A DNA stretch of 53,926 nt from Parasitella parasitica NRRL 2501 (taxonomy: Eukaryota; Fungi; Mucoromycota), in assembly GCA_025201805.1 (NCBI GenBank), contig MU619306.1, positions 113,274 through 167,199 on the forward strand. Reading direction: 5' to 3'. Made by a program: the position numbers and the translations under genes. Each line of letters starts with the position of its first letter. Positions within the stretch are counted from its first letter, which is position 1. Shown piece by piece: positions 2,615-18,448 of this stretch. The notes under the pieces are model-generated. The model saw only the letters and a program-made list of their open reading frames with translations, ran no database searches and was not told the origin of the DNA.

Positions 2615-3460
<846 letters not shown>

Positions 3461-3589
3461 TGATAATAATAATAAATGACTTTGAGTAATACATGCTTTT
3501 GTGTGTATCTGAGTCTGTGTATACTTCTGCTTGGGGTAAGTCTGCTCTGACTGTGCCCAACGAGAGAGCGTGGGGGGAAGGAATTTAGC

Positions 3590-5983
3590 TTATTTGCTAG
3601 CGGTATATTGTCTCATCATATCCAATTCTTTGTGATTATTTCGACCATTAGGCTGACCACCTGGTCCACCCAACGGAGACGTGGCAGAGGTAGGAGAACT
3701 TCCTGTACCTGAAGAGTTTTTCAAAAGCGATTGGAAAAAATTGGCCAAAACTTCATGAGAGGGTGCATTTTGTTGACTAGAGTTTGTCGATAATGCCGGG
3801 GCAGTAGAAGCTAAAGCGGCAGCTGCGGGTGCACCTGCAGTTGATACTGGCATGACACTGTTGGCTCCAGTTGGAGATAAGGGTGATGCCATATGGCCAT
3901 TTTTATTATTGATGCCTTTCATGAGTAGCTTTTCCAAGCTTAGATCCTGTGTATGTAGTTTATATCAGTATGTGCGTGTGTATGTGTACATGAACCTGTG
4001 GGGTTTGTATTTTTTTTGTTTTGTTCAAATACCTTCTTTCGAACATGCTTGTCTAAGTGGCTGCCATTCTCTACAGGTGTTGCTATGGGAAACGCTGTTG
4101 CTGCCGCCGCTGCTGCTGCTACTGTTCCTGGCAGTGTTGCTGTAGTTTCTGGCAGTGACGTTGTTGTCATGGCTGATGCACTGTTTCCGCCACTTCGCAT
4201 CATATGTTGGAGTGCTGCAACAGGAGACTGGCTCAAAGGACCCACAATGCCGGGTCTAGCAATGTCACCGCCGTTGCTAAGGTGCTTTGATTCCTGGTTC
4301 TTTTGCAGTTTTTCATAATGGCGATCGTAAAACGATTGCTCGTCTTCACAGAAGGTTGTGATAGGTATATTGTATTGCGGCTGAATCTCTGACTCGCCGT
4401 TGGGTATAGCTTCTTCATATGTGCCTCTTGCACCTGTATTTCCGGGTTTTTGTCGATCAATGACAGCATCCATATCTGCATCCCAGCCTTCACTTACATG
4501 ATCGCAATCAAAGCCTTCTCTTAAAACTTTAATTTTGTTCCAAGAGTCCCATCCTGAAGGCACAAGTACTGTATCACGTTCAATGACTTGAGCTTTGAGG
4601 CGAAACTTGTATGGTTTGGCATGCGTAGTCAATGTGCGATGAAGGATATATTCACGAAGGTTATGGAATGTGTACGGATGAAGCGTTGATGTATAGAATA
4701 ATGCTGCACCATCTATGCATACACTTGGTTATGCAAAAGCGAGGTAATGTTTAAACAAGAAAAAACCTTACATTTCATACAGATGCATCGCAGCGTTTGT
4801 TGGATAAAGTCAAATTGATCGTCTTTGTAATCATGCGTTTGCTCCAACTTGTTGATTGCGTCGCTCTACGGTGAATTTATATTTATTAGTACAGCCAAGA
4901 ATTCACGCGATATTCCATTACGTACCTTGCAGCAGACGATGGTGATGGGCAAACCCAGATTGTTTGTCAAGCAGCCATTAGTTAGAGGCAGCATGACCTG
5001 GTCTACTGAGGTAGAGGCATTGCTGTTATTGACTAGAGGCGTGCTGCTGGCCATAGTGGAAAATACCGAGCTCGTTGAAGTGGAGGCAGTGAGAATGATG
5101 TTATTGTTTATGAACGACGGTTCTGTATAAGTCTGTAAATAATGTTCCACTACATGATCCATAAAAAAGTTCAGTCTATGTGAAACTTACCCCTCTTCGC
5201 TAAACTTACATTTTTCTTTGATTTCATCGACAACTGCTCTTCCTTTGCTCCAATTTGTATCGGTGGCTATTCCTTCCTTGCAAATTTCATCAATCAAGTA
5301 ATGCAGCACATTGATCCATCGCTCCAGTGTCTCTAGAAACTTCCAAGGACGCGTCCAGTCAATCAGTAACAGGACGCACGAATCAACGATAGTTTCCGCC
5401 CTGATTGCAAACTTTAACAGTGGCAAAAACTCTGGAGACGCAAGGCTTAGCTGATACAAACCAAGTCTTGCAATGGCTGCAAATATAGCATTATTTATTA
5501 CAGGCTCAAAAAAAAAAAGTTTGTACTACAATACCTTCATTTTCTTCATCTTTGACATCTACAAATGAATATCCCAGGGCCAAATCAATCGTTTCATCGT
5601 TCTGAAATTGCCCGGCCAGATTGTTGCTTGGTTGGGCATAGTTGTTATGATTGACGCTAAAAGGCGCCGGATGCTCATTATGATCAAATTTGGGTATTTG
5701 CTGTGGTCCTGGATCATTTTTCAAAAAATGTACCAGTGTTGACTTCCCAACGCCGGGCTCCCCTATAAGATTTTGCTTGGTTACCAAGGGACAAAAGAAG
5801 AAAAAAAAAGCAAGACAAACCTAGAATCAAGACATTCTTTGTGGGCACTATCTTGGATGAAGCTACACCCTTCAATATGCCTGACCAAAGTTCTTCTTTC
5901 TCGGGCATAAAAGTCCTTTGATATTGTTGCGTCAAGTTTGACTGGGTTGAAACACTTTGTGAAGGTGTTACTGAAGATAGCAT
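3590..5983 (-). CDS. Cytoplasmic dynein light intermediate chain, multi-exon
   Basis: EELWSGILKGV, P-loop GEPGVGKST, LLIDWTRPW, NLGLPITIVCCK, VPSGWDSWNKIKVL and C-terminal EVLANFFQSLL helix typical of DLIC. Confidence 0.92.
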
Positions 5984-6843
5984 GTTTGCGTTTTGGAGGA
6001 AGTTAGAAGGAAAAAAAGAGAGAGAGAGAAAGAAAAGCAACAAAATAAGCTCGAGAACCCCTTTTTGCTTTGCCTTTATATATATACATTTATATATATC
6101 TCGTATGTACGCATATAAATAAGCACAGCACAAGACATGTGTGAAACTCTAAATAGCATCTATTTTTTGGACTCGCAGACAAACGTGCATACACACACGA
6201 CATGAAAAGTTTTAAACTTTTTTTTCCAGTTTGGTTCCAGATGAAGAGTTTCTTGTACGGATGTCGAGTTGGCCAAACTAGATACTCGTGCTGAAGATCC
6301 CTTTTTTCATTGATCAGTCTCGGAATCAAAAATTATGCGAGATGAACTTGCCTGTTCAAGAAGCCTTCTTCTTGCTGTTGACCCTGCGTATTTTGCAACA
6401 ACTTCTGATACCATATATAGTTTGCACAGTGATTTAAGATGCTCGCTTTTTCTTTTCTTTTTTTTTTCACACCAGGGCCACAGAAATCAGTTGGTTGAGA
6501 TGCAATCACTAGTGCAGTGAGACGAATATTCTGTAAAGAGCTGTTGCTGATTGGGAGTAGCAATACAAGTGAATAAAGTATATGTGGCTTCTCAGTTTGC
6601 CTCTCAGATGGATGAGCTTACCCCATCGCTTGTCAAGTCAATTTTTAATATCTACGTAATGATACTGCTAATCCAAATTCTTGTATAGTTTATGTGAACT
6701 CCCCCAATCTCCCCCCCCCCCCCCCCAACACCCATCTCACACACACAAACACGCACACAAAACGGAATGGCTTTTTAAAATATATTCTCCACTCTGTTCC
6801 TTTCCTTGCAATCCGAAAAATAAAAATTAAATAAAATAAAGAA

Positions 6844-8469
6844 ATGTATCGAAGACGAATCCCTAAGGTTGATGAAAAGCCGAAAATCCCAGATAACCTC
6901 GAGGAATTTGGCTATGTCTTGAAAGAGAATGGAGAATTGCGCAGTAACAATGAAGGTAACTAAATGCAAAAGACGGAAAAACACGAAAACGACAGGATTG
7001 ACATATTTGCGTAGCGGACCAGCCCTACGTGTTCGATTATCTACCCAAAGATAAACCTTACAACGAAGATCGCTATGATAAGTTTATGGGTAACATCAAG
7101 GATTGTTTGTGATGAATGAGCGCTATTTCTTATTCTATACGTGTAGAGCTTGTTGGAGATATTGTGGAGGATCGTCTTCAACAGGAACCTTTCAACTTTC
7201 AAAAGGTACTTGTCCCTAGTGGTGCAGATCCCGCCAAGGATGTTCATTCATACATCTACATGACGTGAGTCTTTTTTTTTTTTTTCCTTTTCGAATGTCG
7301 CATAGCGGCTAACATTGACACTGATTAGACCAAACGCTATGACCACCACAGGGAAGTTAATGGTCATGATCCCAGGAATCAGCACGAGGTATATAATGTA
7401 CATGCAGTGCACTGAAATACGTTTCACTGATGCAGAGCAACACTGATAGAATTGGACAATGGAGTCAACGAATTATGTGTGATACGAATATCCAGGTACG
7501 TGCCTAATATATGGTTATTATGCAATAAACGCCAAACCAGCATGTGTGTAGTCTGGATCCATGATGGAGATCAGCGAGATGGTGTTTGAAAAAGGCTACG
7601 AGGTTATTATCTTGAATCCAAATGCCAACTTCTGGTACAATGGTCGTGCAAATATGGTGCCTCAGAAACACACGAGTGTTGTGGTTACTGTTCCTGGTAA
7701 AACGACGAATATTTGCATGAGAGCAGAATAGAAAAACTAAAAAAAAAAGTGCATTCGATAGATAGTGACACACCTGAGGCACACTGCCAGTATGTTTTCC
7801 ACAACTTTGTCCGGTAAGACACTCCCTAAAACAGATATGAAATGCTCTACAACTCTATCTTACATGCATTGTTTTCTTTTCGGGATGTGTAGACATGCGA
7901 AGGCGGAAAAGGTAGCCATCATTGCCAACGGCTGGGGAGCACACGGTTTCGTTCTTACCTTGAACACTGAATGTAAGTAATCTTGTAGACCAGCTTGTAT
8001 CTGATTTTGGGGGGCTAATACGGACAACGTTGATCAAAAAGTCGATTATATCAAAGACCATGTCAAGGCGGTTGCAATGACGAATTCTGTACACATGAAG
8101 GACGCAGTCAAAGGCGAAAAGGAACGCGCTTTTGTGTATAATGTAAGCTACATTTAATATTACTTGCATGGGAAGCAATGGTGATATAACCACTCTGCTG
8201 GATAGAACTGCTGCAACTGGTCGGCTTCAGTCGATAAAAAAGGAACGCTCGTGCCAGATATTCGTCTAGGCTGCACAAACATTGCGTCAGGAGAAGCGAT
8301 TGCTGACTATACCTTGCCGACCATGCTGAAGGATATCATGAACTACATTTTCGTTCGAATGGGAGACATCGAGTGGGAGAGCGAGTCAGATGATGATGAA
8401 CCCAAGGAATTAACAGAGGAGGATTTAGAAGTATTATCTCAAATCGATGTTTTGAGCACCAATGCATAA
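6844..8469 (+). CDS. Arb2-domain / FAM172A-like protein, many small exons
   Basis: ATG 6844 MYRRRIPKVDEKPKIPDNLEEFGYVLKENGELR; later exons give KLMVMIPG, RIGQWSQR, YEVIILNPN, HCQYVFHNF and AIIANGWGAHG, matching the Arb2/FAM172 alpha/beta-hydrolase-like pattern. Confidence 0.75.
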
Positions 8470-9645
8470 TATCGCCATAAACAGCTTTTAAATAAACATA
8501 CACATTTGTAGCACAGTGCTTCCTCGCTTGCTGCTGCGGATGCTGCTGTACATTATAACCGTTATACATGGATAGATTCGTCTTGGCACCATGATGCGAG
8601 GCTGCTTCCATTCTATCTTTTTCCGGAGCAGGAACAACTAAAGAGAGGAGGGGGGGTGGTGAAGCAAATGACCAAAAAACAGTGTATCATTGTTTTGATT
8701 TAGGTTAGTTTCTCATGCACCATTATGCGTGACCATCGTGTCGTTATCAATGAACATACAAACATCAACCCGTAGCACTTTTTGCTGTTTTTGCAATGTG
8801 TATTTTCTTGTCGCAGCAGCGAACGCATCGTCAATGGTAATACATGGCAAACACAAACTCCCCCGCGTCAACAAAGAAACATGCATTTTTACAAGGCTAA
8901 AAGAGAAGGAAGAGTCTGCCTTGTTTGTGGATGTTTAAAAAAAAGTGTGTTTGCAGTATTGTACTGCTGCATCACCTTGCATTGCATCTTCTTTCTTAAT
9001 ATCAAATTATTCTACACTCACAATTCTTTTACGTGAACCCAAAGATTGAGATGTTGTTGTTTTTATTGCTGAGATATGATGACGGTTCACAAGGTCATTC
9101 CCCTTTTTCCTTTATTTTTATTTATTTATTTTTGGTTTATAGTCAATGTTGCAGCAAAAAAAAGAAAGAAAAAAAAACAAGCAGCCAGCTTAGCTTGGCT
9201 TGCTGTTGTCAACGTTTTAATTTAATACATGATGGAAAAGCAAGCTGGTTGTATTTAAATCACCACCGGCATAGAAGCAGTTTATAGAAACAGATGTCCA
9301 TAGATGGAAACAATAATAAGGGGGTTTGTATCTGGAGGGTGGGGGAAGAGGATGGGGCGTAATAGGGGATCAATACAGACGATTCCTTTAAGGAACGGAA
9401 AACCCGTTTAAACAGAGATATAGTATTCCGTCTTGTATAACAGATTGTACTGTTTGGTTGGTTCAGCACATATAAATAATATGCAGGTAAAGTCAACTGC
9501 TTTGCAGCATAAATAGTAAACAGACAGACAATCAATCATTGAAGCACTGAGTACGTAAATATTTCGCCACTGTAATTTAATATCATCACCACTATCATCC
9601 CCCTTCAGTTTTTCCGTATTAAAAGAAGCTTGATTTTCTTCCCTT

Positions 9646-11744: not shown

Positions 11745-13153
11745 AAAATCATATACATACCATTTCATTGCTATCCATTATTATTATTTTTTTTTTTTAT
11801 TATTATTTATTATAACCGTATTTTCTATATCACACACCAACACTCTCACACACATATACACACACACAAATATTAGCAATAAAAATAAAAAAAACTAAAA
11901 GCAATTCTTATGTCTACTACTCATATGATGTGAAAATTATGTTTTGTCTAACGATGGTACCACCATGTCGTTAATGTCCAAAGTTATGTATTATACATGT
12001 GAGTCATTGGATCTTCAAAAATATGAACATATATGGCTGTTCTTCATGGGCTTGCACATGTAACTATCCAACTTTTTATATACATGTATATGTATATCAT
12101 TGTGAATTTTCATTGTACACGTCGAGCAGCAGAATGCTTGTACATGCTATGCTTCATTCTTTCTTACATATAATCGTACATATAGATCAACAGTACATCG
12201 CTTTTTTTTTTTGGACAAATTGTTTGTAATGTACTATACATGCAATCAAGTTTGAAACTGTAGACTATGTACATTTTCACGTTACCTACGGCTTAACTTC
12301 CGGCTCATTGGTGTAACTCTTTGTATTTGTTTGGTAAAACATTATGCGACTCAAACAAGTATCTACATACATTTTGTTGCTAAAGTGCAGCAAAAGGGAA
12401 AGTTTGCTCCTGAAGCTTTAGTAGCTAGTAATGGTATTTCCACCATGGATTTATTTTTATTCTCACTTTGCGTTACATCAACAAGACGTTACTTGAAAGT
12501 TTTACAAGATACAGACACATTTGCGATATACGAATGGATAGTCACTGGAAAAAAGAAGGTTGTTGAAATAGATTATTATCAATTATTACCAGGGTTCAGC
12601 AACGCTATTACTAGGTTTTTTTTTTTTTAATTGTTTGTGTTTAGAACAATTCAGAATATAGTAAACATTTGTCTTGTGATTTATCTTGTAATAATAAAAG
12701 CATTTACGTAATATTCAATGTCAAGATACCTACATAAAGAAAAAATGTAGCATTTGCGAGTTTCAATGGTGTGTCTTGAATTCATGTACCATCGATCTCA
12801 GCATGTGAGGCTCTCTGTAAATCATTAAAAATACTAGCCTAACTACATTTCAGCATATTACCCGCTTTCAGTCAAATCAACTTGCATCAGTCAGATGGGT
12901 TTATCTAAAGAAACGAATAAATTATACACTCTTTTCGGAAAGTAAATTCGTCATCGGTCGAAAACAAATGCACACTGAATCGAGAACATGAATTCATTCG
13001 AAAATTCATGTTGTATAAAATGTAAATTGGCCTCGGATGCCCGTGTTGCCAAGATTATTTTGTAGTACAAGCCTTGGCATATTTGAGTATATAAATGCAT
13101 CCCAAATGCTATCTTTTTTTTTATTTCTTTTTCACAATTACACCTGAAATTAT

Positions 13154-13842
13154 ATGACAATGAACATTCAGTTTTTGTATGAAAATGGAAAAGGTTCTGC
13201 TGTCGATGAGTACGGCAGGCCTGAGCCAATGGATTATATTGTTGATGAGGAGCAGTTTCGACTCGAAACGTTGAGTTCTCATACACAATATATAGATCAA
13301 CTGCATTTGGAGAGCGAGAAAATGATAGGGACAATGCAGATCGAAGAGGTGAAACCTAGTAACGATGTTAAAATGAAAGAAACATCAATGATATGAAGTT
13401 ACACCCACTACTCTGATCAGGACAAAGTGAGGTTCTTCAAACTGTTATTTGAGAGATGTCTGAGTGCTGCAGCTGCAGCAAAACATCTAGGGACTCACGT
13501 TCGTACAGGACAAAAATGGGTTGCACAATACGAGAAGGATCCTGACAACATCTTTGAGAAACGGAGAAAAGCTGGCCACCCACTTATTCTCCATGAGGAA
13601 CACAAAAATACTATTCTCGAGTGTATAGACGAGAATCCTTCCGTCGTCTTGGACGAAATAATGAAAAAGTTAAAGCAAACATTTACAGAATTAAAAGTAT
13701 CCAAAACTACTTCTTTCGATTTTGTAAAAAGCAATTGCAATTTGTCTCTCAAACAAGCTCGGCTTCAGCCCATAGACCCGAAACAGCGAAGAAAAGATTC
13801 AAGAGCGCTTGGATTGGATTCGTAAATGGGATAAAACAGATA
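13154..13842 (+). pseudogene. Tc1/IS630-family transposase, 5' part (premature stop, frameshift, truncated before the DDE domain)
   Basis: In-frame ORFs 13154-13396 and 13427-13825 are separated by TGA. HTH 'LSAAAAAKHLGTHVRTGQKW'; a frameshift leads to RNSEEKIQERLDWIRKWDKTDM, cut where the TIR at 13843 begins. Confidence 0.8.
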
Positions 13843-13885
13843 TGGTGTCAGAAACTTAAAAAAAAAAAAAGACCAATGGGACAGG

Positions 13886-14239
13886 ATAGCCTATGATGTA
13901 GCCTATGATATAGGTCATAGGCTATATCATAGGCTATATCGTAGGCTATATCATAGGCTATATCGTAGGCTATATCATAGGCTATATCGTAGNNNNNNNN
14001 NNNNNNNNNNNNNNNNNNNNNNNNNNNNNNNNNNNNNNNNNNNNNNNNNNNNNNNNNNNNNNNNNNNNNNNNNNNNNNNNNNNNNNNNNNNNNNNNNNNN
14101 NNNNNNNNNNNNNNNNNNNNNNNNNNNTATCGTAGGCTATATCATAGGCTATATCGTAGACTATATCATAGGCTATAGCATAGGCTATATCATAGGCTAT
14201 AGCATAGGCTACATCATAGCCTATGGCATAGCCTATGAT
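13886..14239. repeat. 12-bp tandem array (ATATCATAGGCT / ATATCGTAGGCT) within the left TIR; spans an N gap
   Basis: Directly visible; true copy number unknown because of Ns at 13993-14127. Confidence 0.95.
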
Positions 14240-14261
14240 CGAGGTTGCCATTGGCCATTAC

Positions 14262-15857
14262 ATGTCACAGCCTGAATTTGTAACTCTGGTTAATCGTTGC
14301 TTTCTTTACGAAAGTTGTACTACCAACTATACTACACCCCAAAATCTTCGTGTACATCTGCATACTAGCCACAATTTCGTATTTCCTAATCGACTCAAAA
14401 TAAAGCGACGGCGCAACAACAAGTTATTTTGGTATACGCCCTATCCTTGTAATGATAAACGGATCAAGAAGCATTTTGCATGTCCATGTTGCACTGCTCA
14501 TTTCGACAATTCGAACTCTCTCAGCAATCATTTTAATACCGAGCATCAAGATTATCTTCCTGTAGACGAGCCCAGGCCACTATCCCTCAGTAGCGGCAGT
14601 GTATTATCTTGCAGTAATACCAATACATCGTCCAACAGCAACACGCTACCTAGCGAATTGTCTCTCAGTGATGATCAGCACAATTCTCTCAACATCACCG
14701 CCACCATTTTTATGGACAATCATCAAGATCAAGATAGCACTGAAGCTGGGATAAAACGCAACCACGACGAAACTCTCTTGCCGGATACAGTTTCGTTTGA
14801 ACCACCACAGGGCGACCGCTTGACTGTGAGGGATTTTGATGTATCTGAAGCGTTGTACCAAATGCAACTTTCACAAGTATAAATTGTCTCTGGAGGATCA
14901 TCTGCATGTCATAATGGCCTCACCATCGATCTTGCTTTTGACGCCCTACAAGTATCCGGATGAGTTGAAGCCTTTTATTCAGCACGACAACTGGCTTGCT
15001 ACCATTAAACTCATTCAAAACAGGTACAAGATCAATCGGTTGTCTATGCCTGTCAACACCGTGGCCAGCATGCTCGCGACCATCGACCAGCTCCTCACCG
15101 GCAATATCAACAGAAAGGGTGCTGTTCACGCCATTGATTCTTTATCACTATCAGCGCACGAGTCCATGTTTGCTGCGGCATTGTGCTCTTTGATCCGCAA
15201 ACTTCCACCTTAGCCATTGAAGAAGACATGAATGAATCCGAACTGTGCTCGAGATTTGTTGATCCATTCCTTTCTGGTCTTTTTGACGACCCCGATGCCG
15301 GTGTATATCTCCATTGGACCAATGAAACCACTTTAGAAACGAAAAAGCACGGAAATCAAGATAGTTTGCGTCCTGATATGTGCATCACTAAGTCTTACGG
15401 TATCAAGTGGAGCTCAAGCTGTAGATATGGTGAGGCTAAGGCATCCAAGCAAGCGGAAGATCATCATGTGGTATGCTATGATCTCCTCAAAGTAGCAGCA
15501 TTCTGCAAGAATGCTCTTGACAAGCAAAAATTCGATGGTATCTTGGGAATCCAGATCGTTGGCCGAACAATTACCTTTTATGTACTTCTTTTGCCTGCCA
15601 CGAAACTGTACACTATGCTCAGATTGGCCGAGATCAAGCTATCCGACAGCCTCCAAGGTTTGCCATCCTTAGTGACAGAACTACCAAACATCTTGGGTGT
15701 TTTGGATGTATTTGACAACTAATGCATTCCAGCAAAGGATATAAAACGAGCCATCGAATGCCAAACCTCAACAGAACCAATGTCTTTGTTCAACCTCATC
15801 CTCTCATCATCTAAGGATCGAAAGAGACCCTGCCATTTAAAGCTTTGACATAATTAG
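14262..15857 (+). pseudogene. C2H2 zinc-finger + restriction-endonuclease-like (PD-(D/E)xK) protein, frameshifted
   Basis: Two C2H2 fingers (CFLYESC..LRVHLHTSH; CPCC..LSNHFNTEH). C-terminal 'RFVDPFL..LRPDMCI..YGEAK..DLLKVAAFCK..GIQIVG' motif series. Three frames are joined at ~14865 and ~15210, with stops at 15720 and ~15846. Confidence 0.7.
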
Positions 15858-16107
15858 TATCTATTATCCACGTGCTCCAACCAATCTAAACTACCCAATC
15901 TGTACCCACATTTCGGTTGATTTCAAATAAAAAAATATTACCTCCTGCAGTAAAGCACAAATTTTGAATCATCAAAATAATTGGATAGACTTACTCTCTT
16001 CTTCACTTATTTCCATGACCATACACATACAGAGACGTCAAAAAAAGGGTAATTTTGTGTTAGTTTCTGTTAATTTCAGAAAAGTGATATGGCCAATGAC
16101 AACCTCG

Positions 16108-16185
16108 ATCATAGGCTACATCATGGCTAGTAGGCTATATCATAGGCTATATCATAGGCTATATCATAGGCTACATCATAGGCTA
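16108..16185. repeat. 12-bp tandem array (ATATCATAGGCT) within the right TIR
   Basis: About 6 units directly visible. Confidence 0.95.
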
Positions 16186-16223
16186 TCCTGTCCATTGGTC
16201 TTTCTTTTTAGTTTCTGACACCA

Positions 16224-16364
16224 ACGCCCTTGTTTTTGTAGAAACGACTTGTTCAAAGTGCCTCGTCTATTGCGACATTTATCCAAGCATTTACGAGAAT
16301 GTCTAACAATTCCTTTAAAATCATTTGGTTTCAAACTATTAGAAGCTTCACTGATCCGAGCCAT
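16224..16364 (-). pseudogene. C-terminal fragment of a Tc1/IS630-like transposase
   Basis: MARISEASNSLKPNDFKGIVRHSRKCLDKCRN resembles the post-DDE tail of Mucorales IS630/Tc1 transposases (recalled similarity, not searched). Confidence 0.55.
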
Positions 16365-16558
16365 GATTCCTAATTGGTGCGTAGCATACGGTATATCGTG
16401 TATTGTATGTTTATGGATCAAATTGGTGATATGAATGGTTTATATTAATTTCCTTTCGTTTCAGATGCAACTTTTTTTGTTGTTGTTATTTTCAGCGCTC
16501 ACTGGAACAAAAGGTTATTTATAATGTAAAGAGGGGGGGTGTTTATTTAAGAGATATA

Positions 16559-18448
16559 TTAAAAAACGCTTACAAAAGAAATAGACAAACTTTGCAGCTT
16601 CTTACACTTGATAGAAATGTGAAAATCAGCTGGTCCTCTAGGCAAACCCACAGGTCCTTCATCAGTTTTCTGGTAGGTTTTCTGGTGCTCGTCTCCAACA
16701 TTATAGACGTAGTTCTTTGTTACATCGCCAATGGTCACAGCAACTGTGTGACATTTTGGAGGAACAATGCTACGTGAATCAAAAATACTATTCAGGTTCA
16801 GTTCCAAGCAGCCCACTCTAGTCTCGGGGAGATCAATGTTGATTTGATAAATAGAATTTGACATAAAAATACATCTACTAATTATCAATTTACCAACTGT
16901 GGGTAATCTCGGCGACATCTTTAGCAGAACATTATAATGAAATACACAGTTTGTTAGCTTCAGTTCAGAGATGCTTGTCTCCATGGAGGTCATCTGCTTT
17001 CCAAGTCCACGCCTAGGAAAGACCATTTTATCCAAATGCACTACCGATCCAGTCTTGCCGTCAACCAAAGACATGACGCCGTTGAACATACCCCAGAACT
17101 TCTTTTGGGACTTTTGAGCCCACTCAACATTGCTCTCCTTGGAGACGGTTTTGAGATATTCTAATATACATTCAGGTTCCAGGTCAGAGCTGGCATCCAA
17201 TACTCTAATAATATCAAGTGAGAAGCAGGGCTTCAGAGCTTTAAATACTTCATTAAGGTGCACACATTCCATAAAAGCACCACTATCTCTGTTACAACTT
17301 TCAAAAAATCGAACAAATGAACCATTTTTTTTCACCTCAATGCCGTAAGTCTTCGCTGTGTCCCGTCTATCAAGAATCATGGTGAGCTCAGTGGGAATCT
17401 CGGCGGTGTGTTGTGCAAGTGCGTTTGACAGTATTACGAAACCTCTAATTTGATGCAAATAAGTAATCGGATCTAAATCCTTAATGCTGATATCGTAGTG
17501 CGAAACGCCCTGGCAGATATCCACTAGGCCATTCCAGCATTGAATAATAACGTCCTTTGCCGTTGTTTCTGCAAAGGTGTGATCTTCGGTAGTCAGTACA
17601 AATGTCTCTAATGCTTCTAACTTTGTTGCCAAATACTGGAGTGTGGAACCCGAAAGACGACAATCTGTAAGCTGAAGTTTCTTTACACTGCTGTTTGGCT
17701 TCATTTTTCCAGTGTAGTCGTGGTCTCTTGAAAACTTGCACCTCCTAAGCTCCAACAAAGGTGCTTTATCGGGGTAAGAGTTGATAAGGCTGTCTACTTC
17801 AGTGATAATAGGTCTCTGGGCTACTGAGTTGCCCCAAAGCTGCAATTTGGTCAATGATTTGAATTCATTTATGCGTTCCTTCAATTCATGACAGTTGTTA
17901 AGCGACTGGTCAGGGCACAATCGAAGTTCGGTTAAAGAGTCAATGCACTTGAAGCAGAGCGATGTGTACTGGTTACTTGTTGGAATACAATTCTCCATCA
18001 AGGCTATACGTTTTATACACTTGAGATTAGCTTTCTTTGTTATACCGAGCAGACGCCAAGTGACAAGGGGCTCAAAATCATTTGATGAGCTTCCAAATGC
18101 CTCAAGGTATGGGCTATATGTTAAGATGCGTTCGAGGTAATGGTCTAGATCGGGAGAGAATACGGTTTCGTCATTAACAACATCAAGGCGAATCTTGACA
18201 CTCCTAACAATAGAACCGATAGTAGGTTTAGTTCTAAGTGTGTAGACAAAATCAGGAACTGTGTCTAGGCTCAAATCTACATTAGAATATAGCTTATATT
18301 TTGCAGCATTTGACCAGCTTTCGCAAACAAACAGAATTTGGTATAGAAATTTTCCAAATTCTTTCCGACTTGATGTAGCTTCAACAAGCTCAAAAACTTT
18401 TTCTAAAAGCTCGATAGGGAGCTCGTTCCAACTGGATGGTTTAAACAT
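16559..18448 (-). CDS. Intronless F-box protein with LRR/RNI-like repeats
   Basis: 629-aa ORF; N-terminal WNELPIELLEKVF..ILFVCESWSNAAKYKLY F-box; LxxLxL repeats (LTELRL, LTKLQL, VKKLQL, ISELKL). Confidence 0.85.
   Translation of the reverse strand: MFKPSSWNELPIELLEKVFELVEATSSRKEFGKFLYQILFVCESWSNAAKYKLYSNVDLSLDTVPDFVYTLRTKPTIGSIVRSVKIRLDVVNDETVFSPDLDHYLERILTYSPYLEAFGSSSNDFEPLVTWRLLGITKKANLKCIKRIALMENCIPTSNQYTSLCFKCIDSLTELRLCPDQSLNNCHELKERINEFKSLTKLQLWGNSVAQRPIITEVDSLINSYPDKAPLLELRRCKFSRDHDYTGKMKPNSSVKKLQLTDCRLSGSTLQYLATKLEALETFVLTTEDHTFAETTAKDVIIQCWNGLVDICQGVSHYDISIKDLDPITYLHQIRGFVILSNALAQHTAEIPTELTMILDRRDTAKTYGIEVKKNGSFVRFFESCNRDSGAFMECVHLNEVFKALKPCFSLDIIRVLDASSDLEPECILEYLKTVSKESNVEWAQKSQKKFWGMFNGVMSLVDGKTGSVVHLDKMVFPRRGLGKQMTSMETSISELKLTNCVFHYNVLLKMSPRLPTVGKLIISRCIFMSNSIYQINIDLPETRVGCLELNLNSIFDSRSIVPPKCHTVAVTIGDVTKNYVYNVGDEHQKTYQKTDEGPVGLPRGPADFHISIKCKKLQSLSISFVSVF

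Follow-up and report, generated by a model that had tools for sequence, protein, structure and literature searches.

The question raised by this locus is what kind of mobile element could hold a nuclease gene between inverted repeats that contain no transposase. The locus lies in a stretch of 53,926 nucleotides from the fungus Parasitella parasitica NRRL 2501 (assembly GCA_025201805.1, contig MU619306.1, positions 113,274 to 167,199, forward strand), which we call the window and whose numbering is used throughout. A sequence-only reading had proposed that positions 13843-16223 represent a new type of DNA transposon, in which a C2H2 zinc-finger protein with a PD-(D/E)xK nuclease domain does the work of a transposase. 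We favour a different explanation, namely that this unit is most probably the inner part of a decayed Tc1/mariner (DDE_3) transposon with long terminal inverted repeats (TIRs), which encloses the zinc-finger nuclease gene. The element as found in the window spans about 12927-16369. A nuclease between inverted repeats “without a transposase” is a tempting misreading of what appears here to be an eroded Tc1/mariner core.

When intact, such an element would have arms of about 1.5-2 kb, each with a Tc1-type terminus at a TA and a complete, inward-reading transposase gene. Inward of the transposase would follow a short 3' untranslated region (UTR), an A-run, a short-repeat array and a unique inner arm of roughly 30-110 bp, and the two arms would enclose a unique centre of 1.83 kb that codes for the C2H2 zinc-finger and PD-(D/E)xK nuclease protein. 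The Tc1 transposase would act on the two outer termini and so move the whole unit.

Transposase relics on both sides of the unit

To the left of 13843 the window contains the 5' third of a transposase gene, with an open reading frame (ORF) for an N-terminal extension at 13154-13396 and the helix-turn-helix (HTH) DNA-binding part at 13427-13842. This left-arm DNA is 96% identical to the Tc1 sequence of Rhizopus arrhizus (L044:3441-3936), which is an intact DDE_3 gene (PF13358) of 357 aa, and 94% identical to that of Mucor circinelloides (L067:2406-2924). Where the intact Tc1 reads ..ACAGATATGGATTTTAC.., the window at the same place reads ..ACAGATATGGTGTCAG.., and from TGGTGTCAG onwards it corresponds to the final 3' UTR bases of the same Tc1 gene, bases that in R. 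arrhizus (L044) and Rhizopus delemar (L054) come uninterrupted after the transposase stop codon and the 3' UTR. The codon run ending in KTDM is joined to the tail of the 3' UTR, and the TGG at 13843-13845 is common to both sides of the junction, a microhomology of 3 bp. Judged from these alignments, position 13843 is a deletion junction internal to the transposase gene and not the end of a transposon.

The true left end lies further out, at a Tc1/mariner-type terminus (12927-12952) that is preceded by TA and found once in the window. Its tip, CACTCTTTTCGGAAAGTAAA from 12927, is homologous to the CAGTCATTTCAAAAAGTAAA that a complete Phycomyces element (L076, described below) has at either outer end. 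On the right, the unit passes into antisense Tc1 sequence through a junction that is the same in the window, in R. arrhizus (L044) and in R. delemar (L054). Tc1 homology ends near 16369, with 190 bp left to the next host gene; the right terminus and the remainder of the right arm are lost, and this arm is down to about 280 bp. Elsewhere in the genome only fragments of the same Tc1 family were found.

The composite inverted repeats and 12-mer arrays described in the sequence-only reading are confirmed. Between the outer arms (13843-13913 and 16159-16223) the alignment stands at about 90%, interrupted by two small indels, and the complementarity of the inner arms (14229-14258 and 16089-16118) is 97%. 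Arrays of the 12-mer TATCATAGGCTA, with a super-period of 24 bp, occupy 13915-13992, 14128-14236 and 16131-16186; within the left array the units twice reverse their orientation. The dispersed copies with identical TIR ends that had been expected did not appear: the unit is single-copy in the 32.8-Mb genome, where a search with the proposed TIR gave no match beyond its own locus. The outer-arm core (20/21 nt) has only two sites genome-wide, both at this locus, and the tip 13-mer of the proposed TIR occurs at near-chance frequency. Nor can 13843 and 16223 be upheld as transposon ends, the one being the deletion junction and the other abutting the inverted 3' end of Tc1, with no target duplication present at either. 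The earlier statement that no DDE triad is visible stands for 13843-16223 and falls immediately beyond it, as relics of a DDE_3 Tc1/mariner transposase abut both ends.

The state of the window copy can be pictured as a series of losses. The left terminus (12927) is retained, the DDE part of the left arm has been removed by a microhomology deletion at 13843-13845, nearly all of the right arm beyond 16369 has disappeared, and the nuclease ORF has acquired three disabling lesions. Its sequence marks the element as dead and non-autonomous.

Two side observations concern the Tc1 sequences themselves. A stretch of 369 bp in the 5' region (12980-13348), which includes sequence of the extension ORF (MTMNIQFLYENGKG), is common to the M. 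circinelloides and Phycomyces arms and absent from the R. arrhizus Tc1, which suggests that the N-terminal exon or extension of the transposase is variable. Assemblies repeatedly run into trouble at the A/T-run that separates the Tc1 3' UTR from the arrays (L044:2560-2780, L075:6373-6780); those of R. arrhizus and older ones of Phycomyces contain long homopolymer junk, G-runs and N gaps there.

The intact element of Phycomyces and copies in other fungi

A complete element of a sister subfamily (L076) is present in a long-read assembly of Phycomyces blakesleeanus; its nuclease has 40-48% aa identity to that of the window. The two arms (2905-4888 and 6720-8710; 1991 bp) are 99.5% identical. Each starts with TA followed by CAGTCATTTCAAAAAGTAAAGTCGC, that is with CAGTC after the TA, and continues with a full DDE_3 transposase ORF, its stop codon, 13 nt of UTR, an A-run, an array of 23 copies of the 12-mer TTTGTTAAGCAC, a G-run and an inner arm of 112 bp. 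The transposase has 66% aa identity to that of L044, and the centre of 1831 bp (1830 bp in the window) carries an intact zinc-finger nuclease gene of 494 aa. With up to 3 mismatches allowed, the terminus was found at the two outer ends only, and no terminus-like sequence follows the transposase stop codon, where an inner terminus would be sought. This confinement to the outer ends argues that the Phycomyces element is one transposon with 2-kb TIRs and not two elements. TA is found at both ends of this element and of two others (L070 and L071), as well as before the left terminus in the window, where the right end is lost. Because of the flanking TA and the restriction of the termini to the outer ends, we infer that the Tc1 transposase could move the unit as a whole.

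Copies of the window type agree with this build. The right repeat of the R. arrhizus and R. delemar copies continues unbroken into an antisense Tc1 gene, first its 3' UTR and then its stop codon. The M. circinelloides unit has Tc1 pieces on either side, in sense orientation to the left and in antisense orientation to the right, and its deletion points differ from those of the window; an equivalence between its right junction and the left junction of the window was considered and rejected, as Tc1 simply continues there. The left inner repeat is present also on a 2-kb contig from another organism (X8). Taken together, the copies point to a common ancestor that had a whole Tc1 gene on each side, in mirror symmetry. 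That the unit belongs to a mobile element, as had been supposed, is supported; that it represents a transposase-less type moved by the nuclease is contradicted by the relatives, since there the unit is tied to a DDE transposase and its ends run on into Tc1 in four genera.

Two further elements of this build (C128 and C25) occur in the same genome as the window element, with arms that are 99.9% identical and that belong to other Tc1 families. Both end in TA followed by C(A/T)GT and have a nuclease-family gene in the centre. In C128 a transposase ORF of 469 aa is intact in both arms, and the arm boundary falls inside the nuclease gene. Overall, two subfamilies and three different Tc1 families have this layout.

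At least eight inverted pairs of equal-scoring DDE_3 matches, 1-8 kb apart, were also noted in this genome (G000 contigs C46:167897/175900, C66:63818/69960, C46:211998/215770, C30:246049/249895, C29:17151/23961, C45:31903/34280, C38:61848/67094 and C14:312667/313700), and these are probably more long-armed Tc1/mariner elements. A nuclease-family match lies between the two members only in the first pair listed. Of about 43 nuclease-family loci, about 17 are within 4 kb of a DDE_3 match, where about 4-9% would be expected at random, although transposons cluster.

The element DNA, non-coding parts included, is 93-97% identical to the copies in R. delemar, R. arrhizus and M. circinelloides, which are located at unrelated loci, while host genes of these species have 72-74% identity to those of this genome. 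An element identity so far above that of host genes indicates horizontal transfer into this lineage. Within the sister subfamily, identities of 85-94% were found across Phycomyces, Rhizopus, Mycotypha, Umbelopsis and the genome studied here. The elements have thus crossed genera and orders of Mucoromycotina, a group whose members include some opportunistic pathogens and food-fermentation moulds.

The zinc-finger nuclease and its arrays

The ORF immediately after the left inverted repeat, with two C2H2 fingers and an RPD..GEAK motif, is present as had been described; its ATG is at 14262, 3 nt past the left arm. The frame is broken into pieces at 14262-14882, about 14873-15213 and about 15208-15722, with a tail to 15848. 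The R. delemar copy is an uninterrupted ORF of 535 aa with 97.4% DNA identity to the window over 1921 bp, and in comparison with it 11 bp are missing from the window after 14872 and another 1 bp after 15207, and a TAA stands at 15720, which matches the earlier description of a dead copy with two frameshifts and stops. The lesions are present also against the contigs of organism C. RPD and GEAK are kept in the window copy.

Both C2H2 motifs (C-x2-5-C-x12-H-x3-5-H) are encoded in frame A. The Pfam match to zf-C2H2_2 (E 9e-6, 26.2 bits) is just below the cut-off of 26.9, and zf-C2H2_4 gives E 4e-4; other family members match C2H2 models, and the Phycomyces homologues are labelled C2H2-type zinc finger proteins at NCBI. 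Full-length members have 470-535 aa, some of them labelled C2H2-type zinc finger transcription factors there. The UniRef label “Fungal-type protein kinase domain-containing protein”, which some members have (P0019, P0040, P0042), looks like annotation carry-over, as no kinase family was found in 39 members scanned with Pfam.

The middle and C-terminal domains have no Pfam match, and a profile search of PDB sequences gave none either. Eight residues (E13, P59, D60, E79, K81, D95, K104 and D108) are conserved at 90% or more in a diverse alignment of 98 rows. When the C-terminal domain of the closest intact copy was folded alone with this alignment, the resulting model (predicted local distance difference test, pLDDT, 92.3; predicted template modelling score, pTM, 0.88) had an alpha-beta-beta-beta-alpha-beta core, in which the conserved E is on helix 1, the PD is just before strand 2 and the ExK closes strand 3 (H13-29, E61-67, E70-81). 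In a VIA-align comparison with 48,161 chains, the best matches were HsdR (3h1t; Z 9.7, root-mean-square deviation 3.5, 126 aligned), BpuSI (3s1s; Z 9.4) and DrdV (7lo5; Z 8.3), and restriction-fold nucleases made up nearly all of the top 50. Foldseek agreed weakly, with DrdV at probability 1.0 and E 6e-3. In a model of the whole protein (408 aa, 39-row alignment), the catalytic stretch stayed below pLDDT 50 and Foldseek had no match. By modelled fold and by motif, the C-terminal domain is confirmed as a PD-(D/E)xK nuclease, in line with the assignment made from the letters alone. The nuclease domains of type I, IIG and IIL restriction enzymes (HsdR, BpuSI, DrdV) have the same core and the same E..PD..ExK residues; the sequence identity is 11-17%, and the fungal protein has C2H2 fingers and a helical middle domain fused to the nuclease where those enzymes have methylase or helicase modules.

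The family is large. The C-terminal domain is found at no fewer than 43 loci in this genome and matches 1148 cluster representatives in a clustered protein library (E up to 0.001), so that a family of more than 1,100 clusters at 50% identity is left without a Pfam model. All named relatives from the first protein search belong to Mucoromycotina, and so do the clusters obtained from the ESM Atlas, which gave only unnamed Mucoromycota clusters. Among 30-odd paralogues in this genome, inverted repeats within 1.5 kb on either side were seen at two only, both young: 70 bp, 96% identical and 1.3 kb apart at L028 (G000:C6:353230-356547), and 133 bp, 89% identical and 240 bp apart at L034 (G000:C49:56659-59742).

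Each of three finger-bearing subfamilies has its own array unit: the 12-mer of the window, a different 12-mer for the Phycomyces type and, beside a third paralogue, a 21-mer. Two centres without fingers have no arrays. The link between fingers and 12-mers that had been proposed is plausible, and with five cases the association of fingers and arrays is only suggestive. The zinc-finger nuclease itself would seem to be a conserved passenger or accessory gene, not the transposase. Its fingers may read the element's own arrays, and cuts made there by the nuclease may provoke recombination or fold-back copying between the arms. Repair of this kind would explain why the arms are nearly identical, why the left array flips and why arm boundaries shift, and also the boundary inside the nuclease gene of C128 and a palindromic array of 1.3 kb in Umbelopsis.

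This last array (L078:6914-8278, Umbelopsis ramanniana) is located downstream of a zinc-finger nuclease gene, where the 12-mer TTTGTTATGCAC has grown to that length and folds back, with forward units followed by reverse ones. In R. delemar (L054:1-213, JAANJB010003510.1), the place of the left inner arm is taken by a unit of about 210 bp with its own 20-bp inverted ends (..GTCAAAAAACTGCACCAAC..), which directly abuts the ORF start and looks like an insertion or replacement by a miniature inverted-repeat transposable element.

The left array of the window contains an assembly gap (13993-14127). Public contigs of the source sample end at the array, whose words have about 5 times the single-copy depth. 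Two samples (X4 and X5), independent of each other and from the same or a sister organism, have the flanks and frameshifts of the window; in these, one contig joins 13939-13984 directly to 14128-16160, and array words reach about 8 times the depth. From the spanning contigs and the depth, the gap consists of extra units of a collapsed array, with no foreign or unique DNA; it is non-coding and hence does not affect the reading frame. The features of the element are listed in Table 1.

Table 1. Parts of the Tc1/mariner-derived element, in window coordinates.
Feature	Position	Strand	Basis or remarks
True left end: TA, then Tc1/mariner-type terminus CACTCTTTTCGGAAAGTAAATTCGTC	12925..12952	+	Homologous to the Phycomyces termini (TA, then CAGTCATTTCAAAAAGTAAAGTCGC) and to the outer end of R. 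arrhizus Tc1
Left arm, outer part: Tc1/mariner 5' region, DDE domain deleted	12953..13842	+	Pfam HTH_32, HTH_23, HTH_28
Deletion junction, last bases of Tc1 3' UTR, A-run, unique outer arm GACCAATGGGACAGGATAGCC (outer TIR of the sequence-only reading)	13843..13890	+	Comparison with L044 and L054
Left 12-mer array	13886..14239	.	Unit TATCATAGGCTA and its complement, 24-bp super-period; holds the gap 13993-14127
Left inner arm	14229..14258	+	97% complementarity to 16089-16118
Unique centre, 1830 bp: pseudogene of the C2H2 zinc-finger and PD-(D/E)xK protein	14259..16088	+	97.4% DNA identity to the R. delemar copy
Right arm, inner part (right TIR of the sequence-only reading)	16089..16223	-	Inner arm, 12-mer array, unique outer arm, T-run, final Tc1 3' UTR bases
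Right arm relic: Tc1 3' UTR and last ~38 transposase codons, truncated	16224..16369	-	94% identity to L044:2796-2934

Adjoining the element is an ORF of 629 aa (16559-18448, minus strand) that resembles F-box/leucine-rich repeat proteins. Its database homologues number only three, all from Parasitella parasitica, at 57%, 56% and 38% identity, and Pfam recognises an F-box-like domain in one; the gene belongs to a lineage-restricted family. Syntenic host genes (G000:C25:259039-261665 versus LN734207.1) have only 82-83% DNA identity to those of P. parasitica CBS 412.66, as would be expected of a relative and not of that strain or species itself.

Alternatives and relation to known transposons

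The locus might not derive from a single transposon at all. Two independent Tc1 copies could have come to lie around a nuclease gene of the host, or the near-palindromic arrays could have undergone fold-back repair that left an inverted duplication, and in neither case would the assembly move as a unit. An arm boundary inside the nuclease gene, as seen in C128, is what an inverted duplication would leave; the arrays are indeed near-palindromic, with orientation flips, and the genome contains many inverted DDE_3 pairs. However, arms without inner Tc1 termini cannot be two complete elements, and three elements end in TA and Tc1-type termini. The layout recurs in two subfamilies and three Tc1 families, and the unit is 93-97% identical, non-coding DNA included, at unrelated loci across four genera whose host genes are at about 73%. 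We consider an origin of this kind improbable.

That 13843-16223 is itself an autonomous transposon, with fingers that bind the 12-mers, a PD-(D/E)xK domain that cuts the ends and Tc1 as a preferred landing place, would fit the inverted arrays of different 12-mers around the gene in two subfamilies, the 21-mer array adjoining the third finger-bearing paralogue, the conservation of the E..PD..ExK residues (at least 90% in 98 diverse members) and the very large size of the family (1148 cluster representatives), but it is most unlikely, because only one copy of the unit exists in the genome and no target duplication accompanies it, its left “end” is a deletion junction while the Tc1 termini of the intact exemplar are 2 kb further out, and the Tc1 junctions are mirror-symmetric and identical in three species, which insertion into one Tc1 cannot yield.

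Several points weigh against the long-TIR Tc1/mariner transposon that we prefer. The window subfamily has not been seen complete with both full arms, so that its design is taken from the sister subfamily and from partial copies. TA is self-complementary, and a flanking TA is therefore indistinguishable from two extra bases of inverted repeat; an empty site was not found. Transposition of the whole unit is a deduction, as is the role of the nuclease. Moreover, diverged homologues in Apophysomyces (L068) and Parasitella (L069), and most paralogues in this genome, have neither arrays nor arms within the flanks read, which indicates that the nuclease gene persists outside such elements too.

If the long-TIR transposon is accepted, a further step may be suggested, although only tentatively, and we regard it as rather doubtful. 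These elements could be cut-and-paste transposons with two nucleases, in which the Tc1/mariner transposase moves the element and the zinc-finger-guided PD-(D/E)xK nuclease cuts its own subfamily-specific arrays. In a TnsA-like role it would make the second-strand cut, and in a role like that of TnpB or Fanzor its break would cause the element to be copied or retained; that kilobase arms arise and become homogenised would be a side effect. Were this true, it would represent a new functional class of transposon accessory nuclease and would explain the recurrent inverted-transposon “sandwiches” in Mucorales.

As to known systems, the element resembles Tc1/mariner transposons, including members with long TIRs of the inverted repeat/direct repeat (IR/DR) type, in its HTH and DDE_3 domains, its CAGT-like termini, the flanking TA and its proneness to horizontal transfer. 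It differs from ordinary members in that its arms of 1.5-2 kb hold the whole transposase gene, giving two copies per intact element, and in its short-repeat arrays about 1.5 kb from the termini and its conserved central nuclease gene. While the locus itself is an ordinary dead relic, its build is apparently an undescribed variant of Tc1/mariner; a literature search found no paper with transposase-duplicating kilobase arms, internal arrays or a passenger of C2H2 and PD-(D/E)xK type.

Two other architectures were considered and rejected. Foldback elements (FB of Drosophila) have long, rearrangement-prone inverted arms with tandem short repeats, but there the repeats reach the arm tips and the arms contain no transposase, whereas the elements described here are tipped by unique Tc1-type termini, and about 0.9-1.6 kb of unique arm sequence, in which the transposase is encoded, separates the tips from the arrays. 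Composite transposons such as Tn5 and Tn10 likewise have inverted, transposase-bearing arms around a cargo, but their arms are complete insertion sequences with inner and outer ends; inner ends are absent here, and the terminus of L076 at the outer ends only rules out a composite of this style.

The pairing of a DDE transposase with a PD-(D/E)xK nuclease is reminiscent of TnsB and TnsA of Tn7, a comparison of design and not of sequence, and a TnsA-like role in strand cutting is only a possibility. The closest published precedent found is that of Mariner elements in giant algal viruses, which carry GIY-YIG or restriction-like endonucleases plus a methyltransferase or Fanzor; Fanzor1 was reported from Mucorales transposons in the same study (Bao & Jurka 2013, PMC3627910). 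Like the elements described here, the viral ones combine a Tc1/mariner transposase with an extra endonuclease gene in one TA-flanked element. They differ in having short TIRs, a single transposase gene, algal virus hosts and a passenger that is not of the C2H2 and PD-(D/E)xK type and is not flanked by arrays. The RNA-guided accessory nucleases TnpB and Fanzor would have a protein-guided counterpart in the zinc-finger nuclease, if it does act on the arrays of its own element.

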